Source of the DNA: Rebecca billardiae RCC1528
Taxonomy: Eukaryota; Protista; Haptophyta
Length of the DNA: 64,000 nucleotides
Reading direction: 5' to 3'
Assembly (NCBI GenBank): GCA_965240325.2
Contig: OZ251234.1
Coordinates: 1,798,001-1,862,000 of the forward strand
Shown here: positions 1 through 11,634 of the stretch, piece by piece
Numbering within the stretch: position 1 is the stretch's first letter
How the letters are laid out: the number at the start of each line of letters is the position of its first letter
Made by a program: the position numbers and the translations under genes
Notes under the pieces: generated by a model
Database searches by the model: none
Seen by the model: only the letters and a program-made list of their open reading frames with translations
What the model was told of the DNA's origin: nothing

Positions 1-3000
1 GAGCGCACCTCGGCCGCCGACGTCGAGCTGTTCCTCGGCCGCGCGTCGGGCGACGTGTGCGCGGGCAGGCCGTTCATTCTCGCGCGGGCCGACCGCCTGT
101 CCACCGCGGCGCAGGAGGCCGTGCGCGCCTTCCTGCTCGGCGCTGAGCGCGGCGGCAGCGCGCAGCTGAGCCTGCACATCACCGTGCACGGCCCGTCCTT
201 CGTGCCGCCCATGCCGTGGATCGGCACCCGCGTGTGGAGCGCGGGCTCTGCGGATGCGAGCGCGCCCGTGTCCGCGTCCGGCGGCGGCGGCTCGCTCCCG
301 TCGAGCGCGGCGGTCGCGCAGACCGTCCGCGCGGCTGTGACGGCCGACGCTGCCGTCGAGAGCGTCACGGTGGTGTGGTCCGCGTACGCCGGCGCGGGCA
401 AGACGCACCTCGTGCGCAAGCAGCTCGCGCGCGAGCCCGACGACGCCCGCAAGCTCGTGCTCGGCCTTGACGAGCACTTCTGCGCGGAGGACGTGGCGGA
501 GGCGCTCGAGCGCGCCGCGCTGCCGGCGGGCTCGACGGTCGTCGTCCAGCTGCACGCCGGCCACTTCGCGGACGCGGCCGAGCTGGACGCGCTGATGGCG
601 CGGGTCGACGCGCTGCTCTTCCAGCTCCTCGTGCAGCGCTACGTCTCGGGCGGCGCGCACAAGCGCTCCTTCACGCTCGCGCCCGGCTCGCGCTGGCGCG
701 TCTGGGTGGAGGTTCCCAGTGCCATCGGCCATCGCGGGCGCGCGCGCGAGCGCCTTGCTCCGGGTGCGCCCGACGAGGAGCGCGTGGCGAGAGAGCAGGC
801 GACGTGGATGTGTCGCGTGCTGCCCGCGCTCTGCCTCCTGAAGCACCACGAGCTCTCACCGTCCGCGCCGGCGGTGCTTGACCTGGACCCTTCCGTCGAG
901 CGCGTGTGCAAGTACCTGCGCGCGTACCGCGATGGCACGATCGACCGCAAGTTCGGCGGCGCGGGGAGCGCGCCCGCGAAGCACCTCGCCCTGTGCATCG
1001 ACGTCTCGGGCAGCATGCGTGGCTCCAAGTTCGAGACGGCTCTGCGCGAGCTGCTCCGCCTGTTCGACGAGCACGCCGTGCCGGGCGACCTGATCAGCGC
1101 GCTCAGCTTCGACCACACGCACCACGTGGCTGTCGAGGCGCAGCCGGTCCCAGCGGACGCGGGTGCGCGGACTGGGCTGCGCGCGCAGCTGGCTGGCTTG
1201 CCCTTCCTCAACGGCGGCACGGACATGTACAACGCGCTCGCGCGCGCGGTGCGGTGCTGCGAGAAGCCGGCCGAGTTCACGGGGGAGTCTTGGATCATCT
1301 GCCTCACCGACGGCGAGAGTGCGCCCACGCTCCCGGCCTCCGGGCTTGAGCCCGCCCTCGACCGCAGCACCAACCTGCACCTCGCCGTCATCGGCGTGGC
1401 TCTGCCCGATCGCCTCAGGCCGCACATCGAGTCGCTGTGCGCGCGACCGCCGGGCAGCCGCGGGCGGTATGTCGAGTGCGGGCAGTCCGCGGACGCCATG
1501 TCCACCGCGTTCGGCGCCGTCGCCGCGCTGCTGCCGGTGAGCCAGACCTTCGATCTCGACGGCGAGCTCTCGGACTCGGAGTGCCACGAGCTGCTCGCCG
1601 CGTACATGCCGCCTCACGTGCGCTCGCCCGCGAGCGGCATGCTGCTGCAGCACTTCTGGGTGCGGTACCTGCACCGCCGCGTGCGCGTGTTCGACGCGAA
1701 CGACTTCTTCAACTACAACGAGGAGCACGACGAGCTCGGCAGCACGATCATGCGCATCATGCTCGAGGAGGTGGGCGCGTCGCTGGCGCCCGACCAGGGG
1801 AAGCACTGGGCGGGCGACGTGCACAGGCAGATGATCTACGAGATGACGGAGGACGGCCCCAAGTTCGCGATGCTGTGCACGGCGCCGGACCTTATCGACG
1901 AGGACGAGCACGACACGATCGCGCGGCTCGGCTTCGACCTGCCCTCCGCCGACGACCTGACGGATCGCGCCTGCCTCGAGCGGCTGCTCGCGCGCGCGCT
2001 CGGTCTCGAGCTGGACGCGAGCGGCCGGCTCGCGCCGTTGCACGTGGAGGGCTTCGTGCTCACGCTCGACTTCGTGGTCAAGCTGCTGCGCATCCACGAG
2101 CGCGTCGCGTGCGGCGTGCCGTGCATCATGGAGGGCGAGACCGGCGTGTCCAAGACCGCGCTCACGCGCATGTACGCGATCCTGATCAACCGGAGCACGC
2201 ACGAGCGCACCGCGCGCGAGCGCGCCGCGCGCGCCGCGCACCGCGCGCTCGCGCCGCTCGAAGACGCGCTGCGCGGCGCGGAGCTGCTGCCGGCGCCGAC
2301 GGCGATGGCCCCTGCCGACCTTGAGCCCGGGCTCGGCAGCGAGGCCGTCGTCGCGCTCGGCGAGACCATCGCCGCGGCGCTCGAGCGCGAGGCGGCAGCG
2401 GCGGATCTGTGCCGCGCGGCGGTGCAGGCGCTCGCGCGAGAGCCGCCGCCCGGCTGCACGCCCGCGCCACCGGCCGTGGCGGAGGGCGCGGCAACCGGCG
2501 GCGGGCAGGCGCTCGCGGAGCTCGTGCGGCACGTGGCGCGCGCCGAGGTGCCGCCGCTCTTCTTCCACATCAACGTGCACGCCGCGCTCACCGCCGACGA
2601 CGTGCACGCCGCGCTCCGCCCCGCGTGCGCCGCCGCCGATGCGCTGCACGCCGGGGCGCGCGCGGCGAGCGGCGACGGCGCGGCGGCGCCCGCCGACGCC
2701 GACCCGGCGTCCGAGGCGAAGGTGGTCCTCTTCCTCGACGAGGTGAACACGGCATCGTGCATGGGCGTGTTCAAGGAGCTCATCGTCGACCGCACGCACC
2801 GCGGCGCGGCGCTGCCGAGCAACTTGCTGCTCATCGCCGCGTGCAACCCTGCGCGCACGCTCGAGGTCGGCGGCGACTCAGCCGGTAACGGCACCGGCGG
2901 CGGCGGGCCGCCGCCGCAGCAGCAGCAGCAGCCCGCCGCGGCGCTGAGCCAGGACGACCTGGGCAAGGACTGGGCACTCGGGCACTACCAGGTGCGCGCG

Positions 3001-6000
3001 ATGCCGGCGACGCTGCGCTCGTTCATGTGGGAGTACGGCGCGCTGGGGAGGGCGCAGGAGGAGGACTTCGTGCGCCAGCGCCTCGTGATGAGGGCGGATC
3101 TGCCCGCCGCGGCCGCGAGCGCGGCCGCGACGGCAATCGTCACGTGCCAGCATTTTGTGCGGCAGTGCTCGGCCGAGCACATTGCGCGCCGGCTGCGGAG
3201 GGCATGCCCGGGCATGTCCGAGGCGGCGGTGCGCGAGGAGGCGGACGAGCGCTCGCAGGCGACCGTCTCGCTGCGCGACATCCAGCGCACGTTCACGCTC
3301 CTCGACTTTTTCACGGGGCCGGTGTGGCGCGCGTGCGCCGGCTTTGGCGCGCCCGGCTCGGCTGCCGAGCGGCGCGCGCGCGCGGACGGCGCGGCGGATG
3401 CCGAGGTCGCGCATGCGGCGCTGATGCTTGCGATGGTCGTCGTGTACTACGCGCGGCTGAGCGCGGAGTATCGCGGCCGCCTCGAGGAGCAGATGGCCAC
3501 GCTGCCGACGTCGGCGGCGGCGGGGGCGGGCGGGCCGCCTGCGCGTCGCTCGTGGTCGCTGCGCGCCGCGCTCGCGCGCGCGATGGACACGGTGGTGGAG
3601 GCGACCGAGCTGCCGAGAGGCGTGGCGCGCACGGAGGGCCTGCGGGAGAACGTGTTCATGACGTTCGCGTGCGCGATGGCGGGCGTGCCGCTGATGATCA
3701 TCGGGCCGCCCGGCTCGTCGAAGACGCTCAGCGTGAACGCCGTGAGCAGCAACGCGCACGGAATGGAGTCGGCGCGCGCCTTCTTCCGCCCGCTGCCGCG
3801 CATCGAGACTTTCCACTACCAGTGCTCGCACCAGTCGACCTCGACCGACATCGAGCGCGTGTTCGTCCGCGCGATCGAGCGGCAGCGGCTGCAGGACCGC
3901 GAGCGGCTGCGCTGCCTCGTCTTCATGGACGAGGCCGGGCTGCCCGAGGAGGGGCGCGAGTCGCTCAAGGTGCTCCACTACTTCCTCGAGCAGGACGCGA
4001 CGCCGAGCGACCGCGGAGGTGCCGCCGAGCCGTCGGCGGGGTCGCGCACGCGCGTGAGCTTCGTCGCGGTGACCAACCACGTGCTCGACGCGGCCAAGTC
4101 GAACCGGTGCGCGTGCCTGCTGCGCTCCGAGCCGTCGGAGGACGAGCTGCACGCGATCGCCAGCTCGTGCCTCTTCGACAGCGCCGAGTCCGCGCCGTCG
4201 CCCCTCCACCTCGTGAGCGGCCTCCCCGCCGAGGGCGTGCGCGTCGAGCAGCTGCTCCTCGGCCTCTGCACGGCCTACCGCGATCTCTGCCGCGAGCACG
4301 AGTGGTTCGAGGCGCGGTTCGGCCTGCGCGACTTCATCCACACGCTGCGCCTCCTCCGCCGCACCTCGGTCGCGTCGAGCACGGGCCTCGCGCTCTCGGG
4401 CGAGGCGCTGCTGCGCGCGATCTCGCGCAACTTTGGCGGGATCGAGCGCGAGCGGCTGGCGACGGTGGCCACGACCTTCTTCGCGCGCGTGCTCGGCAGG
4501 CGCGACGCCGACGTGTCCGCGCGGGTGCGCGCGCTGCTGCCGCCGCAGCTCGACGCGCTCGAGGCGGCGATCGCGGACGGCGCGCCCACCGCCGACGCGT
4601 TCGCGCCGCGCTACCTGCTCATCCTCGACCCGAGCCCGGACGAGGCAGCGCTGCGCTTGCCGCGCGAGCACGGCATCGCCGCGCTCGGCGGCGGCGGCGG
4701 GTACGGCGGCGGCGAGCCCTCACCCGGCGGCGGCTCGAGCGTCGTGCTCAAGCTCTCCGACTTCCACGAGGACGCGGAGGCGCGGCGCGTCGGCATCGTC
4801 TCCTCCGTGAAGCACGCCGCGGCGCACGGCCGCTTCGTCGAGCTGAGCAGCTGCGAGGCCACGCACGAGAGCTTCTACGCTCTCTTCAACCAGCAGTTCA
4901 AGACGATCGCGCCGACCGCCGAGGGTGGCGAGCCGCAGACCTTCACCACGATCGCGCTCAACGCGTACTCGCAGATGTGCGTCGTGCGCCCGGCGTTCCG
5001 CTGCGCTGTGCACATGCCGCTCGCCGGCGTGGACAAGGCGCCCGCCGCCTTCCTCAACCGCTTCGAGAAGCACGTGCTCTCGGCGGCAGACGTGCTGCGC
5101 GCGCGGCTGCGCGGCGCGCCGCCGGGACTCGCGAGCGCGCTCGAGGCCGCGCGGCTCTCCATGTGCAAGCTCGCGGCCAAGCTCGAGGGCGCGAGCTCGC
5201 TGCGCGGGTACGTGGAGGAGCAGACGGCCGACTCGATCCTTCTGGCGATGCTCGTGCGCCCCGAGCCGCCGAGCGCGGCCGCACCGGACCCCCCGTGTGC
5301 ACGCGCCGCGCCGCCGGCCGCCCACCCGCCTGTGGCCGCGGCGAGCGCGGCGCTGGCGCGCGCCTTGGGCTGGCCAGCGCTCAGCCACGCCAGCTCGTGC
5401 GCGCTGCCCGATGCAGCCGCGGCGGAGCTGCGGGGGTCGCTCGGGCCTGAGCTCGCCGCAGCGTGGGACGAGGCGCTGGCGCCGCCTTGCCCTGCCGAGC
5501 GCGTGCCGTCTTGGGAGCAGGCGGCTGCGGACGCGCTCGCCGGCGCAACGGGCGTCGACAGCCCGCCGCGCACGCGGCTGGCGGCAGCCGTGTGCGCGCG
5601 CATCGTCGCGTGGCGCGCGTGCGTGCGCTTGCTCGGCCTCGCGACGCCCGAGGCGATTTGCCGGCTCCACGCGCGGGTGCCCCCGTCGCTCCTCGCCGCG
5701 TACCTCGACGCCGACCTCGGGCACTTTGCGCCCACGTGCGTGGCGCGCGCCAAGGCGCACGGCGGTCTGCAAGTCGTGCACGCGCGCGCGGCGGTCGCAG
5801 GCGCGCAGCGGCTGTGGGCCGCCGCGGCGCAGCCAGAGGGCCGCGTCGTGCAGCTCGCGATGATGGGCACGGAGAAGCGCCTGGTCGACGAGCTCGAGGC
5901 GTGGGCGCGAGGCCCGCCCAGCGGCGTGCTCGTCGCGATCGTCGACCTCAGCGCAGTGCGGCCGTCGCGCGTGCACTTCCTGCGGTTTGCAGCGGAGCGC

Positions 6001-9000
6001 GCGCTGCGCGATCGCGCCGAGCGCCTGGCTGGGAGCGGCGGCGGCGGCGGCGTGGCGCACGAGGCGGCGTCCATCGGCGCGCGCGCGGCCGAGCCGCCCG
6101 CGCCGGCGGCGCCTGGCCTCGTGCTCGTGCTCCAGCCGCCCGCCTCCGCCTCTCTCTGCGCGGACTCGAGCGCCAGCTACCCAGCCCTCTTCCACGGCGG
6201 ATGGCGGCACACTTTTGTGGACGATGCCGCCGCCGTCGCCGGCCAGGCTGCTGGCGGCGCGTGTGCCGAGGGCCACGCGCGGCTGGCCGGCGAGGCGGCG
6301 CGCGCGTGGTGCCTCACCGCGTGCGGCCTCGAGGCCGAGTGGGACTCGCCAGCCTACCTCATGTCCCTCGGGCCCGCCATGCGGCGCGCCGTGGCGGGGC
6401 GAGTCGCCGGTCTCGACGACGCAGCCTCCGGCGGCGCGGTTGCGGGACCCGGCGCCGGCGCGGGCGCGTCGAGCGACCCCTCTGCCGGCGCGGGCACGCT
6501 GCCGGCGCGGGCGGAGGCGCTGGAGCGCCTGCTCGGTGCGCGTCTCGGCGAGGGCGAGCGCACCCTCGAGCACGCGCTGTGCGCGCGCTTCGCGCGCGTG
6601 CTCCCGAGCGAGGTCGTGCGCGCCGAGGTGAAGGCCGCCGCCGCTCGGCTCGTGGCGGCAGACGGTGCGGCATCGCTGTGCGAGGAGGTGGGCGCGGGGT
6701 TCGCGGCCGCGTACGCCAACTTCGTCGCCGCCTTCGTCGCGCGCACGTGCGCCGACGGCACCGCTGTGCTGCTGATCGAGCACGCCGCGCGCGCCGCCGA
6801 GCCGCCGGAGTGTGGCGTCCCCGGCGCCGCGCCGAGTGCCCAGCCGGCCGCGGGGCCTGAGCCGCCGCAGCCGGCTGGCGTGCGCGCGTTGCCGATCGAC
6901 CCGCTGGTGGCGCTGCTGCCCGTGCCGCCGCTGCGCGAGCTTCAGCTGCTCTCGCAGCCGCACCCTGCGCGCGGCTGCGCGCGCCCAGCCGCCTTCCCGT
7001 TCTTCCGAGTCGCCGAGGCGGCGCTCGACAGCGCCCTCGACGAGGCACGGGCGCAGCTCGATGCAGCCGAGCCGAGCCGGAGCGGCGGCGGCGGCGCCGC
7101 CGCGCAGTCGGCGGCGCACGTGCTGCGCACGCCCGCCGCCGATGCGGACGTGGCCGCGCGCGCTCGCGAGCTCGTGCGCGCCGAGCGCGGCGGCGAGCAC
7201 CGGCTTGCCGCGTGGCTGATCGAGCGGCTCGAGGGCGACGAGGAGCTCGCGCTGGCGTTCGCGCGCGAGGCGTGCTCGGCGCTCAGCCTCGGCGCCGCCG
7301 CGCTGGACGCCTCGGCCACGCGGGTTGTCGTGGAAGCGGTGCTCCTGCCGCAGCTACTCGAGCGCGCGCGCGGGTGCGCGTGCGCGCTCAGGCTGCTGCA
7401 GGGCGCGCGAAGGCTCCGCGTGGATGCGGTCTCTCTCGCGGGCTTTGCAACGGCGCTGCCGCTCGAGCTCTGGACCAGCGGCCAGCTCGGCGCCGCCGCG
7501 CCGTCGGCGGACGCTGGCGCAGCCACGCCGGCTCAGCGCGCCGCCATGCGAGCGGCTGAGTACGCGCTCGACCGCGCGGCCGCGCTCGCGGCTGACCTCG
7601 ACTCGCCGGCCGCGGCGTGGCAGGCGTGGGGCACCTCGGCGCGCGAGCTGCTACAAGAGGCGCAGTGCGTCCTGCACGGCGAGGAGGCGCCGTCGGCGGC
7701 GCTGCTCGCGCCGCTTGACGCGCTCGCGTGCGCGGAGGCGCTCCACGCCGCCGGCGAGGGCGGTGAGTCCCTCGCGCAGCTGCTCCGGCTGCCGCCGAGC
7801 AGCGGCGGTGGCAGCAGCAGCGACGAGGGCGTCTTCGAGCGCGCGTGCGAGCTACTCGAGGCACGGGCCGCCGAGGGAGCCGGCGCGAGTGGGCGGCGAG
7901 GGGATGAGCGCGCGCGGCGCGCGCTGTGGCGGCTGCTGCGGTGGCGCTCCTCGCCGTGGCGCCTCTCGGCGCTCGGCGCGGAGGCGGTGCCGGCGACCGC
8001 GCGCAGCGCGGCCGCAGCTGTCTCGCAAGCCCGGCTTTTGAACGAGGGCCAGGCGGTCGCGCTCATGGCGCGCGTGCTCGCCCACGCGCCCGCTGCAGAC
8101 GCGTCGGCGACGGCGGCGGCGGCGGCCGGCGGAGAGCCGCGCGCTGACCCGCGCGGCGCGCCCGGCTGGGCGGCGGTCGAGGCCGCGCTGCAGGCCAGGG
8201 CGGACGATCCGCGCCACGCACCGTGGTCGCCGGCTGCGTGGGTCGCGGGCGACGCCGCCGCCGACGGGCACCCGGGCCAGCGCCTCGAGCGCGCGTGTGG
8301 CGTGGCGCTCGTGAAGCTCGAGCTGAGCGCGCCTCGCGCATACGCGGACGGCCGCGCCGAGCACGAGCTGCGCTACTTCTGCCAGCGCCTCGGCGGCGAC
8401 GACGTGGCGGCCGCGCCGCGCTCCGCCGGCCGGCTCGAGGCGCTTCGGGACGAGGCGGTGAAGGCGCTCTTCGCCAAGTTCATCGCCCACGCCCTCGTCC
8501 GCGTCGCGACGGGTGGCGCGCGCGCGCGGCAGGGCGTGAGCATGCGCGAGCGGGCCGCCTTTGCCGCGCTCGAGCGGCAGCGCACTGCTGACTGGCAGGC
8601 CGCCAAGGAGCGCGGCGCGCTGCGGCTCCTGGCGTCGGACCCGCGGCTGCAGGCAATCGTCGTGCGCACGATCCTCGCCAAGTACGGCGAGCCCGCCGTC
8701 GAGCAGGTGCTCTTCGACGCGCGCGCGCTGCTTGCGGAGCCGTGGGCGGACGAGCTGCGCGCGCACGTGCTGCCGCCGGCTGCGCTCGAGGCGGCGTCGC
8801 AGCACGCGCGCGAGCACACACGGCAGCGGCTCGCGCGCGCAGCGATGCAGGAGCGCCAAGACGAGGCGTGGAAGGCGGCCAACTGCCGCCTCTGCCCGCA
8901 CTGCCGCACGCTCGTGTACCGCAGCGAGGGGTGCGAGGCGATGGTCTGCGGCCGCGACTACCACGACGCGGCCGCGGCCCAAGGCACCCGTGCCGGCTGC

Positions 9001-11634
9001 GGGCAGACGTTCGAGTGGGGGCTGGCGCCGCCGTATGTGCCGGACATGAGCCAGAGCGCGATCGACGCGCGCGTGCGCGCCGCCAACGCCGAGTGGGCGC
9101 GCGTGGACAGCGCGCGCGCGCACTGGGATGCGCTGCAGGCGGACGCGGCGCGGCAGCCGTGCATCGCGGCCGCGGTCGACGCGGACGCGGTCTCGATGGC
9201 GGTCGGCAGCGCCACCGTCTCGGACGCCGTGCTGCACGCGCCGGACGGCGGCGCGCCGCCCGCGCTCCGGCACTTCATGCGCGCGCGGCGCACGCTCCGC
9301 CGCCTCGCCGGCCTGCCCGATCTCGTCGCGCTGTACGCGTGGCTGAGCGAGCACCTGCAGCACCTCGTGACGCACGCCGACGCGGCGCGGCTCACGGCGG
9401 GCCACGTGCTCTCCGAGCCGACGCTGCGCGCGCGCTTCCCTCCGGCGGAGGCGCGGCGCGTGGGCGCGCTGTGGCACCGCGTCGTCGCGTGCTTCAACCT
9501 GTACGCGCGCGAGGTCGGGCACCAGCTCGGCGCCGGGCCGTGCGCCGCACCCAACCCGCTCCCGGCGCTGGACGAGAGCACGGCGCTGCTCCACCTGCTC
9601 TCGGACGGGGCCTCGGTCGACGACGGCAACGACGCGCTGATGCGCGTGATCGTGGCGATGGTGGGTGAGTACAACGAGTTCGCCTCCTCGGCCGCGCCGC
9701 GCGCGGCGGCCTCGCCGTCGGCGCCGCGCCTGTTGCAACCCGGCTGGCTCACGCAACGCCATCTCGTGCTCGGAGATGTGCTGCCGCACGAGATGCGTGC
9801 GCACGCGCACGCGGCCGCTGGCCCCGAGACGGCCTTCGAGAGCTCGATCGACGAGTACTGGGTCCGGCCCGGCGGCCCCGACTTCGACCTGCGCGCGCTC
9901 GAGCGGGACGTCGCCGAGACCTTCCTGCGCCGCTGCCAGCTCATCGACGACCCGGCCGCGCGCCTGCGCCGCCGCTTCCGGTTTCGGTCGGTCGAGCTCG
10001 GCGGCGGCGTGGGCGGCAGCAGAGCGCCGGCCGCGCTCGCGCCGATGGAGGTCCGGGTCGAGCTCCACGCCGTCCTCCGCGCCCTGCGCCACGGCGCCGG
10101 CGAGGACGAGGACGGCGCGCCTGTGCCCGAGCTGAGCGAGGCCGAGAGTGCCGTCATCCGCGCGGCGCTGCACACCGCGCCGCGCGACGCGCTCCGCACC
10201 GTGCTGCGCGCCGTGCGCTTGACGGCCGACCTGTTCGAGCAGCGGCAGGCGCAGCTGGCTGAGGAGGCGGATGAGGAGGGCGGCGCTGCGCAGCGGCAGC
10301 ACCAGCCCGAGCGCCACCGCTCGAGCGCGCAGCCCGGCCCACACCGCGCCACCATGCGCACCGTGCTGCACAGCGCGGGCGCTCACGACGACGCGCGCGC
10401 GCTCGGCAGCGTCGGGCTCGGCGCGCTCGATGGGACGATCGCCGAGCACATCCTCGGCACCGAGGTGCCGCACGGCGCGGCCCGACTCGCCGTGTTCGTC
10501 ACCGACGCGCTCGTGCTGCGCACGCACGACTTTGCGCACGTGCCGCTGCGGTACCAGCAGGAGCTGAGCTGGGACGGCCGCTGCGGCGCGCGCGGCGTCT
10601 CGGACGAGCAGGCGGCGGCCATCTTGGATGAAGTCCTGGCGCACTGGGAGGGCGATCTGCTCGGCCGCGAGCCAGCCGAGTCGATGCGCACGTACCTGCG
10701 CGAGATGCACGCGCTCGACGCGGACGAGGTCGACGTGGACGCCATCCCGGCCGACGCGCGCCTCGGGCACTACGTCTGCGTGCGCCTGGCGCTGCGCCGC
10801 ACGGCGCGCGCTGGCTCGTCCGCGACGGCCGCCGAGCCGCAGCCGCTGGCGCGGGCCGGGCACGCCGCTGCCGCCGAGGACATCTGGGGCGTCACAGACG
10901 GCGAGACCATCGCCATCGCGCGCGACGGCGATGGCGTCGAGCCCCATGCGCCCGACTCGCCGCACGCTGAGAAGCTCTGGTTCGAGGCTTGCCTCACAGA
11001 GCCGCGAGGGCCGGAGGCGGCCGCGCCGCAGTGTGCGGAGGCGCCGCCCAGCGGCGAGCCGTCTGCTCCGGCCTCGGCTGAGGCGTGGGAAGCCGACGCC
11101 GCTGTGCCAGCAGCGCTCGAGGCACCCCCACCTGCGCTCGAGGCGGCTCCTGCCGAGGCCTGCACGCGCCGCGCCGCCCAGCAAGAAGACGCGCCGCCGG
11201 CCGAGGGCCGAGGACCTGCTGCAAGTGAGCGTCCTCGCCCCGAGAAGCCGCAGCCCAACTCGAAGACGCGCGCCGCGCCGCGCGCCCTGCTCTTCGCGCT
11301 CCTCGCAGCCGCTCTCGCCATCTGCCTCCAGCTGGGGGCGCGCCTCCCCGCCCTGCACTGGCCTTTGCGCGCGACTCCGTTCCGCCCGACCGAGCAAGGA
11401 GGACACGACGGCGCTGCTGCCTCGACCCAGTCGGAAGTCTGCGACTTTGTGCGCGCACACCAGCTACCCGAGCGTGCGTGCGATGATCTCGCTCAGCTCG
11501 GCGTGCGAGCGCTTGATGATCTGGACCTGCTCGAGGAGGCGGGCGTGCAGGTGCAGGACCTACCATTCGCCCGTGCCCCGGTCGACCGGCTGAAGTGGGA
11601 GCGGGCCGTGGCCACGCGTCGGCACACGCCGTAG
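1..11634 (+). CDS. RNF213/mysterin-like giant AAA+ ATPase and putative E3 ligase with vWA insertion and Rcat/IBR-like finger (5' partial)
   Basis: Frame is open from base 1 (ERTSAADVELFLGR...), so the start lies outside the window. RNF213-type motifs occur in the expected order: VVWSAYAGAGKT, LTLDFVVKLLRIHERVACGVPCIMEGETGVSKT, FLDEVNT, IAACNP, VSLRD, IIGPPGSSKT, VFMDEAGL, LKVLH, NHVLDAAKSNR, FGLRDF, RNFGG, SFYALFNQ, FLNRFEKH, FHGGWRHTFVDD, LPDLVALY. vWA motif DVSGS..GGT..LTDGE at about 980-1540. CPHC..GCEAMVC at about 8880-9040. Confidence 0.88.
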   Translation, partial: ERTSAADVELFLGRASGDVCAGRPFILARADRLSTAAQEAVRAFLLGAERGGSAQLSLHITVHGPSFVPPMPWIGTRVWSAGSADASAPVSASGGGGSLPSSAAVAQTVRAAVTADAAVESVTVVWSAYAGAGKTHLVRKQLAREPDDARKLVLGLDEHFCAEDVAEALERAALPAGSTVVVQLHAGHFADAAELDALMARVDALLFQLLVQRYVSGGAHKRSFTLAPGSRWRVWVEVPSAIGHRGRARERLAPGAPDEERVAREQATWMCRVLPALCLLKHHELSPSAPAVLDLDPSVERVCKYLRAYRDGTIDRKFGGAGSAPAKHLALCIDVSGSMRGSKFETALRELLRLFDEHAVPGDLISALSFDHTHHVAVEAQPVPADAGARTGLRAQLAGLPFLNGGTDMYNALARAVRCCEKPAEFTGESWIICLTDGESAPTLPASGLEPALDRSTNLHLAVIGVALPDRLRPHIESLCARPPGSRGRYVECGQSADAMSTAFGAVAALLPVSQTFDLDGELSDSECHELLAAYMPPHVRSPASGMLLQHFWVRYLHRRVRVFDANDFFNYNEEHDELGSTIMRIMLEEVGASLAPDQGKHWAGDVHRQMIYEMTEDGPKFAMLCTAPDLIDEDEHDTIARLGFDLPSADDLTDRACLERLLARALGLELDASGRLAPLHVEGFVLTLDFVVKLLRIHERVACGVPCIMEGETGVSKTALTRMYAILINRSTHERTARERAARAAHRALAPLEDALRGAELLPAPTAMAPADLEPGLGSEAVVALGETIAAALEREAAAADLCRAAVQALAREPPPGCTPAPPAVAEGAATGGGQALAELVRHVARAEVPPLFFHINVHAALTADDVHAALRPACAAADALHAGARAASGDGAAAPADADPASEAKVVLFLDEVNTASCMGVFKELIVDRTHRGAALPSNLLLIAACNPARTLEVGGDSAGNGTGGGGPPPQQQQQPAAALSQDDLGKDWALGHYQVRAMPATLRSFMWEYGALGRAQEEDFVRQRLVMRADLPAAAASAAATAIVTCQHFVRQCSAEHIARRLRRACPGMSEAAVREEADERSQATVSLRDIQRTFTLLDFFTGPVWRACAGFGAPGSAAERRARADGAADAEVAHAALMLAMVVVYYARLSAEYRGRLEEQMATLPTSAAAGAGGPPARRSWSLRAALARAMDTVVEATELPRGVARTEGLRENVFMTFACAMAGVPLMIIGPPGSSKTLSVNAVSSNAHGMESARAFFRPLPRIETFHYQCSHQSTSTDIERVFVRAIERQRLQDRERLRCLVFMDEAGLPEEGRESLKVLHYFLEQDATPSDRGGAAEPSAGSRTRVSFVAVTNHVLDAAKSNRCACLLRSEPSEDELHAIASSCLFDSAESAPSPLHLVSGLPAEGVRVEQLLLGLCTAYRDLCREHEWFEARFGLRDFIHTLRLLRRTSVASSTGLALSGEALLRAISRNFGGIERERLATVATTFFARVLGRRDADVSARVRALLPPQLDALEAAIADGAPTADAFAPRYLLILDPSPDEAALRLPREHGIAALGGGGGYGGGEPSPGGGSSVVLKLSDFHEDAEARRVGIVSSVKHAAAHGRFVELSSCEATHESFYALFNQQFKTIAPTAEGGEPQTFTTIALNAYSQMCVVRPAFRCAVHMPLAGVDKAPAAFLNRFEKHVLSAADVLRARLRGAPPGLASALEAARLSMCKLAAKLEGASSLRGYVEEQTADSILLAMLVRPEPPSAAAPDPPCARAAPPAAHPPVAAASAALARALGWPALSHASSCALPDAAAAELRGSLGPELAAAWDEALAPPCPAERVPSWEQAAADALAGATGVDSPPRTRLAAAVCARIVAWRACVRLLGLATPEAICRLHARVPPSLLAAYLDADLGHFAPTCVARAKAHGGLQVVHARAAVAGAQRLWAAAAQPEGRVVQLAMMGTEKRLVDELEAWARGPPSGVLVAIVDLSAVRPSRVHFLRFAAERALRDRAERLAGSGGGGGVAHEAASIGARAAEPPAPAAPGLVLVLQPPASASLCADSSASYPALFHGGWRHTFVDDAAAVAGQAAGGACAEGHARLAGEAARAWCLTACGLEAEWDSPAYLMSLGPAMRRAVAGRVAGLDDAASGGAVAGPGAGAGASSDPSAGAGTLPARAEALERLLGARLGEGERTLEHALCARFARVLPSEVVRAEVKAAAARLVAADGAASLCEEVGAGFAAAYANFVAAFVARTCADGTAVLLIEHAARAAEPPECGVPGAAPSAQPAAGPEPPQPAGVRALPIDPLVALLPVPPLRELQLLSQPHPARGCARPAAFPFFRVAEAALDSALDEARAQLDAAEPSRSGGGGAAAQSAAHVLRTPAADADVAARARELVRAERGGEHRLAAWLIERLEGDEELALAFAREACSALSLGAAALDASATRVVVEAVLLPQLLERARGCACALRLLQGARRLRVDAVSLAGFATALPLELWTSGQLGAAAPSADAGAATPAQRAAMRAAEYALDRAAALAADLDSPAAAWQAWGTSARELLQEAQCVLHGEEAPSAALLAPLDALACAEALHAAGEGGESLAQLLRLPPSSGGGSSSDEGVFERACELLEARAAEGAGASGRRGDERARRALWRLLRWRSSPWRLSALGAEAVPATARSAAAAVSQARLLNEGQAVALMARVLAHAPAADASATAAAAAGGEPRADPRGAPGWAAVEAALQARADDPRHAPWSPAAWVAGDAAADGHPGQRLERACGVALVKLELSAPRAYADGRAEHELRYFCQRLGGDDVAAAPRSAGRLEALRDEAVKALFAKFIAHALVRVATGGARARQGVSMRERAAFAALERQRTADWQAAKERGALRLLASDPRLQAIVVRTILAKYGEPAVEQVLFDARALLAEPWADELRAHVLPPAALEAASQHAREHTRQRLARAAMQERQDEAWKAANCRLCPHCRTLVYRSEGCEAMVCGRDYHDAAAAQGTRAGCGQTFEWGLAPPYVPDMSQSAIDARVRAANAEWARVDSARAHWDALQADAARQPCIAAAVDADAVSMAVGSATVSDAVLHAPDGGAPPALRHFMRARRTLRRLAGLPDLVALYAWLSEHLQHLVTHADAARLTAGHVLSEPTLRARFPPAEARRVGALWHRVVACFNLYAREVGHQLGAGPCAAPNPLPALDESTALLHLLSDGASVDDGNDALMRVIVAMVGEYNEFASSAAPRAAASPSAPRLLQPGWLTQRHLVLGDVLPHEMRAHAHAAAGPETAFESSIDEYWVRPGGPDFDLRALERDVAETFLRRCQLIDDPAARLRRRFRFRSVELGGGVGGSRAPAALAPMEVRVELHAVLRALRHGAGEDEDGAPVPELSEAESAVIRAALHTAPRDALRTVLRAVRLTADLFEQRQAQLAEEADEEGGAAQRQHQPERHRSSAQPGPHRATMRTVLHSAGAHDDARALGSVGLGALDGTIAEHILGTEVPHGAARLAVFVTDALVLRTHDFAHVPLRYQQELSWDGRCGARGVSDEQAAAILDEVLAHWEGDLLGREPAESMRTYLREMHALDADEVDVDAIPADARLGHYVCVRLALRRTARAGSSATAAEPQPLARAGHAAAAEDIWGVTDGETIAIARDGDGVEPHAPDSPHAEKLWFEACLTEPRGPEAAAPQCAEAPPSGEPSAPASAEAWEADAAVPAALEAPPPALEAAPAEACTRRAAQQEDAPPAEGRGPAASERPRPEKPQPNSKTRAAPRALLFALLAAALAICLQLGARLPALHWPLRATPFRPTEQGGHDGAAASTQSEVCDFVRAHQLPERACDDLAQLGVRALDDLDLLEEAGVQVQDLPFARAPVDRLKWERAVATRRHTP

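Follow-up and report, generated by a model that had tools for sequence, protein, structure and literature searches.

A predicted one-zinc, Rcat-derived finger in a vWA-containing RNF213-like AAA+ protein of the haptophyte Rebecca billardiae

The stretch of DNA analysed here (the window) comprises 64,000 nucleotides of contig OZ251234.1 from Rebecca billardiae RCC1528 (positions 1,798,001 to 1,862,000, forward strand), and has a G+C content of approximately 75%. It begins within a single plus-strand reading frame of 3,877 codons that continues uninterrupted to a stop codon at 11632-11634 in frame 1, and that encodes a giant RNF213-like AAA+ protein containing a vWA domain. Because this frame is open to the first base of the window, the 5′ end of the gene and the N-terminus of the protein lie beyond it, and the terms visible frame and visible protein refer below to these 3,877 codons. 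In its C-terminal region is a small cysteine-rich finger, which an earlier inspection of the letters by themselves (hereafter the sequence-only reading) had proposed to be an Rcat (RING2) domain of the kind found in RBR ubiquitin ligases. This finger and its setting are the main subject of this report.

The affiliation of the host protein with RNF213, in humans an immune ubiquitin ligase, is evident from its AAA region. When the frame was compared with PDB sequences by phmmer, residues 652-1700 aligned with RNF213 structures at an E value of 3e-40, identifying an AAA3-AAA4 region of RNF213 type. The alignment spans both modules and the subsequent lid region, and RNF213 from mouse and human (chains including 6tax, 7oik and 8s24) provided the sole strong matches of the frame. 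Pfam recognized the vWA domain in addition to weak AAA matches. We conclude that the encoded protein belongs to an ancient branch, of vWA type, of the RNF213-like giant AAA+ proteins.

The finger corresponds to the peptide CRLCPHCRTLVYRSEGCEAMVCGRDYHDAAAAQGTRAGCGQTFEWGLAPPY, which is encoded verbatim in frame 1 at 8884-9036, as the sequence-only reading had quoted it. It is the sole cysteine-rich cluster within the 3,877 visible residues and holds their only CxxC. A motif scan of the visible frame detected neither a C3HC4 pattern nor a C-x3-H motif of RZ type, and Pfam reported no RING or ZnF_RZ-type match at E ≤ 1 and no IBR match above threshold. Neither RING nor RZ was detected by Pfam in the full-length orthologues P0003 (4,961 residues) and P0014 (5,102 residues), in which inspection likewise disclosed no other cysteine-rich finger. 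The earlier remark that canonical RING and RZ motifs are missing is thus upheld for the visible frame and for these two complete proteins.

HMMER was used to scan 1.84 billion representative proteins exhaustively with residues 2751-3560 as query, and 455 matches were returned at E ≤ 1e-3. Among the best 150 of these, more than 100 align only at a segment of approximately 80 residues that contains the finger (35-57% identity, E values of 1e-10 to 1e-16), and the whole C-terminal region is matched by only a few long proteins. A word-indexed search with the C-terminal region found nothing, which reflects its limited sensitivity, given the 455 HMMER matches. The family consensus reads D-E-x-W-K-A-x-N-C-R-x-C-P-x-C-x-R-x-V-x-K-x-x-G-C-D-S-M-x-C-G-x-D-Y-H-G-G-N-x-Q-x-G-C-G-x-x-F-x-W-x-x-A-x-P-Y. 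Conservation was assessed by a census of 166 domains from the retrieved proteins, based on hidden Markov models (HMMs) and made without a pattern filter, an earlier alignment having been picked by regular expression. Exactly five cysteines are invariant in 166/166 domains, namely those at positions 2965, 2968, 2978, 2983 and 3000 in window numbering, as are the proline that follows the first of them and the glycine that precedes the last. The extra cysteine of the C-x-x-C-P-x-C sequence in the window protein (Cys2962) is dispensable (131/166 domains), and the position of His2988 is histidine in 134/166.

These patterns point to a reduced Rcat domain with one predicted zinc ion, one free cysteine and a nearby histidine. 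Ligands 3 and 4 are separated by a loop of 12-16 residues that usually carries the histidine. The second zinc site is absent, with F-E-W-G-L standing at this place in the window protein and no conserved downstream cysteine or histidine in the family. The residue after the cysteine at the catalytic position is acidic or asparagine (Glu2979 here), and the next is serine in 56 and alanine in 22 of 105 family fingers. The sequence-only reading was right that alanine stands here in place of the usual histidine (GCEA for GCxH).

Several comparisons relate this finger to Rcat. First, when a profile of the 105 fingers was run against PDB sequences, RBR ligases accounted for 33 of the 37 matches listed, the other four being the weakest rows. 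ARIH1 was the best match (E value of 1.7e-4), and HOIL-1, parkin, CUL9 and ARIH2 came next. The profile alignment spans the linker helix and the active-site strand, where it places GCdsmvC of the family onto GCNHMVC of ARIH1, such that the cysteine of the GC pair falls on ARIH1 Cys357. Second, an AlphaFold model of the finger built on a deep alignment (mean predicted local distance difference test score, pLDDT, of 82.6) found RBR ligases as all 50 of its 50 best Foldseek matches, with E values of only 0.1-2.5. Third, in an independent VIA scan of 48,161 chains, the six best matches included HOIL-1 RING2 (Z 3.8, root-mean-square deviation (rmsd) of 2.7 Å over 54 residues), parkin and RNF216.

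Fourth, the company that the finger keeps elsewhere is informative. Among 67 family members of intermediate size (250-900 residues), the consensus shows a C3HC4 RING1 first, then an IBR, the finger and finally a ZZ domain. Pfam identified IBR in 38 and ZZ in 20 of these proteins, RING models in several, and UBA, PUB or WWE domains in a few. Members from rotifers (Rotaria) are labelled "RBR-type E3 ubiquitin transferase" in UniRef; the named small-family members are from Rotaria rotifers and one MMETSP marine-eukaryote transcriptome, the rest coming from metagenome or transcriptome assemblies. Because the finger is third after RING1 and IBR in the mid-size members, it is the Rcat-position domain of a widespread RBR subfamily. 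On these grounds we judge it very probable that the finger is homologous to Rcat, as the sequence-only reading had supposed, and the profile comparison that this reading had called for came out in two parts: the family profile does match Rcat domains in the PDB, and the Pfam IBR models stay below their cut-offs.

One further protein deserves mention alongside these architectures. P0086 (3,277 aa, ENA) is an RNF213-like AAA protein (RNF213 in the PDB at an E value of 7e-30) with two tandem one-zinc Rcat fingers, at 3067 and 3165, after which the C-terminal core described below is not present. Two upstream cysteine clusters within its residues 2856-3232 are spaced like RING1 and IBR; this candidate assignment was confirmed neither by Pfam nor by phmmer.

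The surroundings of the finger were examined with an AlphaFold model of residues 2901-3560, computed from an 18-sequence alignment (pLDDT 71). In this model, a helix of 28 residues leads into the finger and one of 32 residues leads out of it, and a disordered link then connects to a helical core. The entry helix is the counterpart of the linker helix that precedes the ARIH1 Rcat. Judging by this order of elements, the finger, bracketed by the entry and exit helices, probably forms the tip of a helical hairpin.

The helical core provides the second structural link to RNF213. VIA-align superimposed residues 3069-3326 on residues 4745-4979 of human RNF213 (Z 10.3, rmsd 3.5 Å, 222 residues), the next and unrelated match having Z 5.8, and the eight best Foldseek matches of the 2901-3560 model are all RNF213. 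In the model, the core therefore seems to be the structural counterpart of the final portion of the RNF213 E3 shell. The E2-docking C-terminal domain (CTD) of RNF213 starts near human residue 4986 (PMC12075652), and for this reason the region holding LPDLVALY and FDLRALER corresponds to the end of the E3 shell in RNF213 nomenclature. Together with the AAA3-AAA4 match, this result bears out the earlier description of the host as RNF213-like and shows that the downstream RNF213 C-terminal-like motifs are real at the level of the fold. The further helical region that follows (residues 3327-3560) could, by position, correspond to the E2-docking CTD. The superposition on RNF213 suggested by the sequence-only reading hence succeeded for the shell segment and left the CTD unmatched.

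The algal finger and the RZ finger of RNF213 lie in the same part of the E3 module, but the earlier statement that the algal finger occupies the place of the animal RZ is only roughly accurate. The algal finger ends approximately 65 residues before the conserved shell segment, versus approximately 200 residues for the human RZ (C4505-C4528), and neither residue-level equivalence nor evidence of a shared insertion point or a common location in three dimensions was found. Forced global hhalign of the finger-bearing against the RZ-bearing E3 regions reached only a low probability (5.8%), was biased by the choice of sequence boundaries, and is not counted as evidence of positional equivalence.

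To place the finger in an evolutionary context, we examined 57 long relatives found by searching with the AAA region, the closest being from Pavlovales sp. CCMP2436 (50-55% identity). Relatives occur in haptophytes (Pavlovales sp. CCMP2436 and Prymnesium), the pelagophyte Chrysophaeum ("VWFA domain-containing protein"), the diatoms Seminavis ("protein ligase RNF213") and Thalassiosira, Ectocarpus, Ochromonas, the sponges Oscarella and Oopsacas, Paratrimastix, Polarella and Diplonema, with bat RNF213 the most distant. Databases label these relatives RNF213 or VWFA and leave the finger unannotated. It is carried by 10 of the 58 proteins when the window protein is included, the others being P0001, P0010, P0159, P0189, P0193, P0003 (Chrysophaeum), P0014 and P0163 (both Seminavis), and P0157, whose cluster includes a Leptocylindrus protein. 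In the Chrysophaeum and Seminavis orthologues and in metagenomic relatives, the finger occupies the same position, with homologous sequence on either side. In the diatom proteins and their clade-mates, the active-site strand has drifted to N-C-G-Q-F-x-C-G, and all five cysteines are retained.

Other lineages possess the scaffold and lack the finger. An HMM of the finger-bearing E3 regions detects the downstream core in finger-less lineages at E values of 1e-20 to 1e-71 (1e-46 to 1e-71 in sponge and haptophyte relatives), starting at the equivalent of residue ~3074, and no cysteine finger lies upstream of this core in P0178 (Oscarella), its clade-mates P0176 and P0190 (transcriptome entries), P0166 (Prymnesium), P0200 or P0201. 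As a separate observation, the LPDLIEFYQWLH core of P0178, P0176, P0190 and P0195 (Oopsacas) agrees nearly letter for letter with the diatom/pelagophyte consensus. No cysteine finger, RING or RZ was seen in these four proteins.

In a maximum-likelihood tree of the AAA4 region, all finger bearers fall within a 33-row clade (support 100/99), where a single node leaves four branches unresolved. Three of these hold the finger bearers; in the remaining branch and in the sponge-containing clade, no protein whose core can be recognized has the finger. Support is 100/100 for grouping the window protein with P0001 and the Pavlovales sequence. Two RZ-bearing proteins are found across a 100/99 branch, on long branches that make their placement uncertain. 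Thus, the survey of relatives for RZ versus Rcat that the sequence-only reading had recommended yields the finger in 10 of 58 proteins and RZ in two proteins on the far side of the tree. Also of note is P0203 (5,201 aa, Logan), in which NHL repeats and an RNF213-like AAA core occur together with a true RZ (PF20173, E value of 2e-16), RING being absent.

The simplest reading of these sequence data is one insertion of a linker-helix-plus-Rcat module in the ancestor of the clade, followed by loss; alternatively, the module was gained in a subgroup that the tree leaves unresolved. Neither history is a one-for-one replacement of RZ. The idea that a different catalytic module had been swapped into the animal scaffold consequently gives way to that of a lineage-restricted insertion in a separate vWA-type family, distant from the RZ bearers, in which sponges and Prymnesium have the core without the finger. 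In a literature search of limited coverage, neither an RNF213-like protein with an Rcat-type finger nor a subfamily of one-zinc Rcat domains was found to have been described.

Taken together, these observations lead us to propose, with a probability of about 0.6, that a reduced Rcat inserted in an RNF213-like AAA+ protein acts as a transthiolating E3. A module of approximately 120 residues (helix, finger, helix) would have been inserted just upstream of the E3-shell core in a sub-clade comprising diatoms, a pelagophyte, a Pavlovales-like lineage and the window genome, producing a transthiolating E3 that has neither RING1 nor IBR. RNF213 itself transthiolates by means of a mobile single-zinc finger with a loop cysteine, with its E2 docked on the CTD and its RING dispensable (PMC12075652). 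By analogy, E2~ubiquitin would dock on the helical shell or CTD of the window protein, ubiquitin would be passed to Cys2978 on the mobile finger held by the helical hairpin, and Cys2978 would discharge it to substrate with the assistance of His2988 or Glu2979. The AAA core might gate or control this transfer. We infer zinc stoichiometry, thioester formation, E2 docking, ATP control, substrate and biological role alike, and consider catalysis by the finger, taken on its own, slightly favoured. A defence or immune role for the algal protein is possible, this analysis having provided no direct evidence of one.

Several observations weigh against this proposal, and a number of them favour its best-surviving competitor, which we nevertheless regard as unlikely: that the finger is a non-catalytic zinc ribbon resembling IBR or BRcat, a structural or ubiquitin/ligand-binding knob on the hairpin rather than a thioester-forming E3. 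Canonical Rcat domains have a second zinc site (F-C-W-x-C ... H/C ... C) that the window finger lacks, and their C-x-His, which supplies the histidine of the catalytic triad, has become C-[D/E/N]-[S/A] in the family, with Ala2980 here. These two losses speak for a non-catalytic ribbon, as does the absence from the visible frame of any RING1 or IBR that could recruit E2~ubiquitin. The Pfam evidence points the same way, in that such matches as exist are to IBR models and fall below cut-off. IBR_2 gave 20.7 bits on the window finger versus a 27-bit cut-off, and IBR_1 and IBR_2 matched 66 and 62, respectively, of the 105 family fingers only weakly (best E values of 0.0013-0.0017), consistent with this sub-cut-off score. 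Fold statistics for so small a domain are weak, with the Foldseek values given above and VIA Z scores of at most 3.8 (3.1-3.8 for RBR matches), and have weight only through their mutual agreement. A search of the ESM Atlas with a rotifer homologue produced RBR look-alikes that were all sub-threshold. Moreover, the parkin matches in the VIA scan (ranks 2, 5 and 14) cover residues 330-370, which we take to be IBR rather than RING2.

Two additional difficulties concern the scaffold. Because sister lineages keep the core without a finger, the basic function of the scaffold needs none, and the existence of related proteins that function in this way also favours the zinc ribbon. Furthermore, the C-terminal ~230 residues, on which the E2 would be expected to dock, show no significant match to the RNF213 CTD by sequence profile, hhalign or superposition. 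The C-terminal family profile found no RNF213 among PDB sequences, and its hhalign comparison with bat RNF213 was not significant, yielding a lone stretch (LPDLVALY / LPEILALQ) in the same register as that of VIA-align.

Three results lead us to prefer the transthiolating E3 over the zinc ribbon. The cysteine at the Rcat catalytic position is invariant in all 166 domains, although the four other cysteines suffice for one zinc. The family profile aligns to the Rcat of ARIH1, linker helix included, and not to its BRcat. Finally, the consensus of the RING1-IBR-finger-ZZ proteins offers no other candidate for the Rcat domain.

A second alternative, which we consider highly improbable, holds that the finger and the animal RZ are the same module, either because RZ is a very diverged Rcat or because a diverged RZ has been inherited at the same site, in which case there would have been no swap or insertion at all. 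In mouse RNF213, Cys4451, His4455, Cys4471 and Cys4474 of RZ bind one zinc, with Cys4462 as the nucleophile and His4483 as the base (PMC12075652); H4509 and C4516 of the human RZ are cited elsewhere (PMC12203941). Both fingers thus seem to have a single zinc, a free cysteine between ligand pairs and a nearby conserved histidine, as reported for RZ and predicted for the algal finger, and both are located upstream of the structurally conserved shell segment. However, the PF20173 profile of RZ gave no match to the window finger at E ≤ 10 and no signal in any of the 105 family fingers, whereas the true RZ fingers of P0203 and P0204, serving as positive controls, score E values of 1e-16 to 1e-17. 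The hhalign comparison of the finger family with RZ reached a probability of 12% over one 12-residue knuckle, and a sequence relationship was not found. The spacing of ligands and the distance to the core differ, the RZ-bearing proteins are separated from the finger bearers by the 100/99 branch, and the intervening clades are without any finger. Hence, the algal finger and RZ appear to be unrelated by sequence.

That the finger is a chance cysteine-rich stretch in a GC-rich frame, or part of a non-expressed or mis-joined gene, can be dismissed almost entirely. Such base composition does yield long spurious open reading frames (ORFs) in all frames, but hundreds of homologous fingers exist at E values of 1e-10 to 1e-16, the Chrysophaeum and Seminavis orthologues and metagenomic relatives carry the finger in an equivalent position with homologous sequence around it, and the frame is continuous with conserved domains on either side.

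The remaining features of the locus are as follows, with coordinates collected in Table 1. The vWA domain follows a GAGKT P-loop (391-405) and precedes the AAA3-like module, an arrangement that recurs in the orthologues P0003 and P0014. Within the AAA3-like module, a low-complexity insertion rich in Gly, Pro and Gln, GGDSAGNGTGGGGPPPQQQQQPAAAL, is found at ~2830-2930 (residues ~945-975), between the Walker B region and a conserved YQVRAMP motif. The 3′ end of the frame encodes a low-complexity stretch rich in Ala, Pro and Glu, then a transmembrane-like hydrophobic segment, ALLFALLAAALAICLQLGA (11284-11340), and then approximately 95 residues, ending at 11631. SAM domains (PF00536, PF07647) are present in several relatives according to precomputed Pfam annotation; Pfam gave none on the window protein. 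Long antisense or off-frame ORFs overlap the gene, such as one of 1,202 aa on the minus strand (7852-11460), and at this G+C content we take them to be composition artefacts rather than genes.

Table 1. Coordinates of the RNF213-like frame and of features within it (window positions; residue numbers refer to the visible protein)
Feature	Position	Strand	Basis or remark
vWA-containing RNF213-like giant AAA+ protein frame	1..11634	+	3,877 codons + stop, uninterrupted
vWA domain (residues 329-466)	985..1398	+	Pfam VWA_2, E 3e-8; VWA_3 at its cut-off
DVSGSM, DxSxS metal-ion-dependent adhesion site (MIDAS)-like motif in vWA	1000-1017	+	motif position
AAA region aligned to RNF213 AAA3-AAA4 (residues 652-1700)	1954..5100	+	phmmer vs PDB chains
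Walker A GETGVSKT	2134-2157	+	motif position
Walker B-like LFLDEV	2728-2745	+	motif position
Walker A GPPGSSKT	3703-3726	+	motif position
Walker B-like VFMDEAG	3919-3939	+	motif position
Entry helix (residues 2934-2961), ends QDEAWKAAN	8800..8883	+	AlphaFold helix 34-61 of model; profile aligns to ARIH1 325-345
One-zinc Rcat-derived finger, predicted (residues 2962-3012), peptide CRLCPHCRTLVYRSEGCEAMVCGRDYHDAAAAQGTRAGCGQTFEWGLAPPY	8884..9036	+	family searches, profile, model, census
Predicted zinc ligand Cys2965	8893-8895	+	homology with ARIH1
Predicted zinc ligand Cys2968	8902-8904	+	homology with ARIH1
Cys2978, candidate ubiquitin-thioester nucleophile, in G-C-E-A-M-V-C	8932..8934	+	on ARIH1 Cys357 by profile; invariant 166/166
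Predicted zinc ligand Cys2983	8947-8949	+	homology with ARIH1
His2988 of finger loop	8962-8964	+	family conservation
Predicted zinc ligand Cys3000	8998-9000	+	homology with ARIH1
F-x-W replacing F-C-W of the Rcat second zinc site	9010-9018	+	family comparison
Exit helix (residues 3020-3051)	9058..9153	+	AlphaFold helix 120-151 of model
Helical core (residues 3069-3326), holds LPDLVALY and FDLRALER	9205..9978	+	VIA-align, Foldseek, conservation
LPDLVALY	9313-9336	+	motif position
FDLRALER	9883-9906	+	motif position
Further helical C-terminal region (residues 3327-3560)	9979..10680	+	family alignment; helices modelled at moderate confidence

If a distant branch of the family has independently recruited an RBR finger to the same part of the E3 module, this would provide convergent support for the recently resolved mechanism of RNF213, and would indicate that Rcat is usable outside the RING1-IBR context. 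The comparison would also define a minimal Rcat, consisting of one zinc, five cysteines and a loop histidine, that is present as well in a large set of RBR ligases and goes unrecognized by Pfam IBR models at their cut-offs. The finger can be mutated at one cysteine, which makes for a compact system, and the role of such ligases in marine algae becomes a question to pursue. A reduced Rcat in a protein that shows neither RING nor RZ suggests that the scaffold acquired a cysteine active site more than once, with RZ perhaps in the animal and NHL-type branch and the orphan Rcat in the diatom/pelagophyte/Pavlovales-like branch. A more general model, to which we give somewhat less than even odds, is that RNF213-type AAA scaffolds serve as a general chassis that has independently received unrelated fingers, each with a single zinc and a free cysteine, and that the algal protein is an ATP-gated transthiolating E3 whose Rcat, without RING1 or IBR, is loaded by an E2 on a non-RING helical domain.

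Among known systems, the small RING1-IBR-finger-ZZ proteins share with the window protein the finger itself (35-57% identity), together with its flanking helix and A-x-P-Y tail. However, they are only 250-900 residues long, have their own RING1 and IBR and often ZZ, UBA, PUB or WWE domains, and are without the AAA core. The Rcat domains of ARIH1/HHARI, parkin, HOIL-1 and RNF216 have in common with the window finger the linker helix ending in W-x-x-x-N, the CPxC knuckle, a complete first zinc site (formed by this knuckle and two cysteines past the active-site strand), the G-C-x-x-M-x-C sequence, and C-x3-F-x-W at the fourth ligand. Canonical Rcat domains are preceded by RING1 and IBR, whereas the window finger stands alone in the visible frame and has a 12-16-residue loop with a conserved histidine between ligands 3 and 4.

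The RZ finger of RNF213 and ZNFX1 (PF20173) resembles the window finger in having one zinc, one free cysteine nucleophile and a nearby histidine on a large NTPase, features that are predicted in the algal case, but its ligand set (C-x3-H ... C-x2-C) differs in composition and spacing. RNF213 has both RING and RZ; the visible frame of the window protein contains neither, has a vWA domain inserted in the AAA region, and represents a separate family branch whose C-terminal region is not alignable with that of RNF213 by sequence. RNF213 also has an N-terminal stalk with a CBM20 domain, any counterpart of which in the algal protein would lie outside the window. Nevertheless, RNF213 (6TAX, 7OIK, 8S24 and 9JWG) and the window protein are both giant proteins with a dynein-like AAA core and a helical E3-shell segment, and the catalytic logic of RNF213, comprising a mobile single-zinc finger, a CTD-docked E2 and a dispensable RING (PMC12075652), could carry over to the algal protein.

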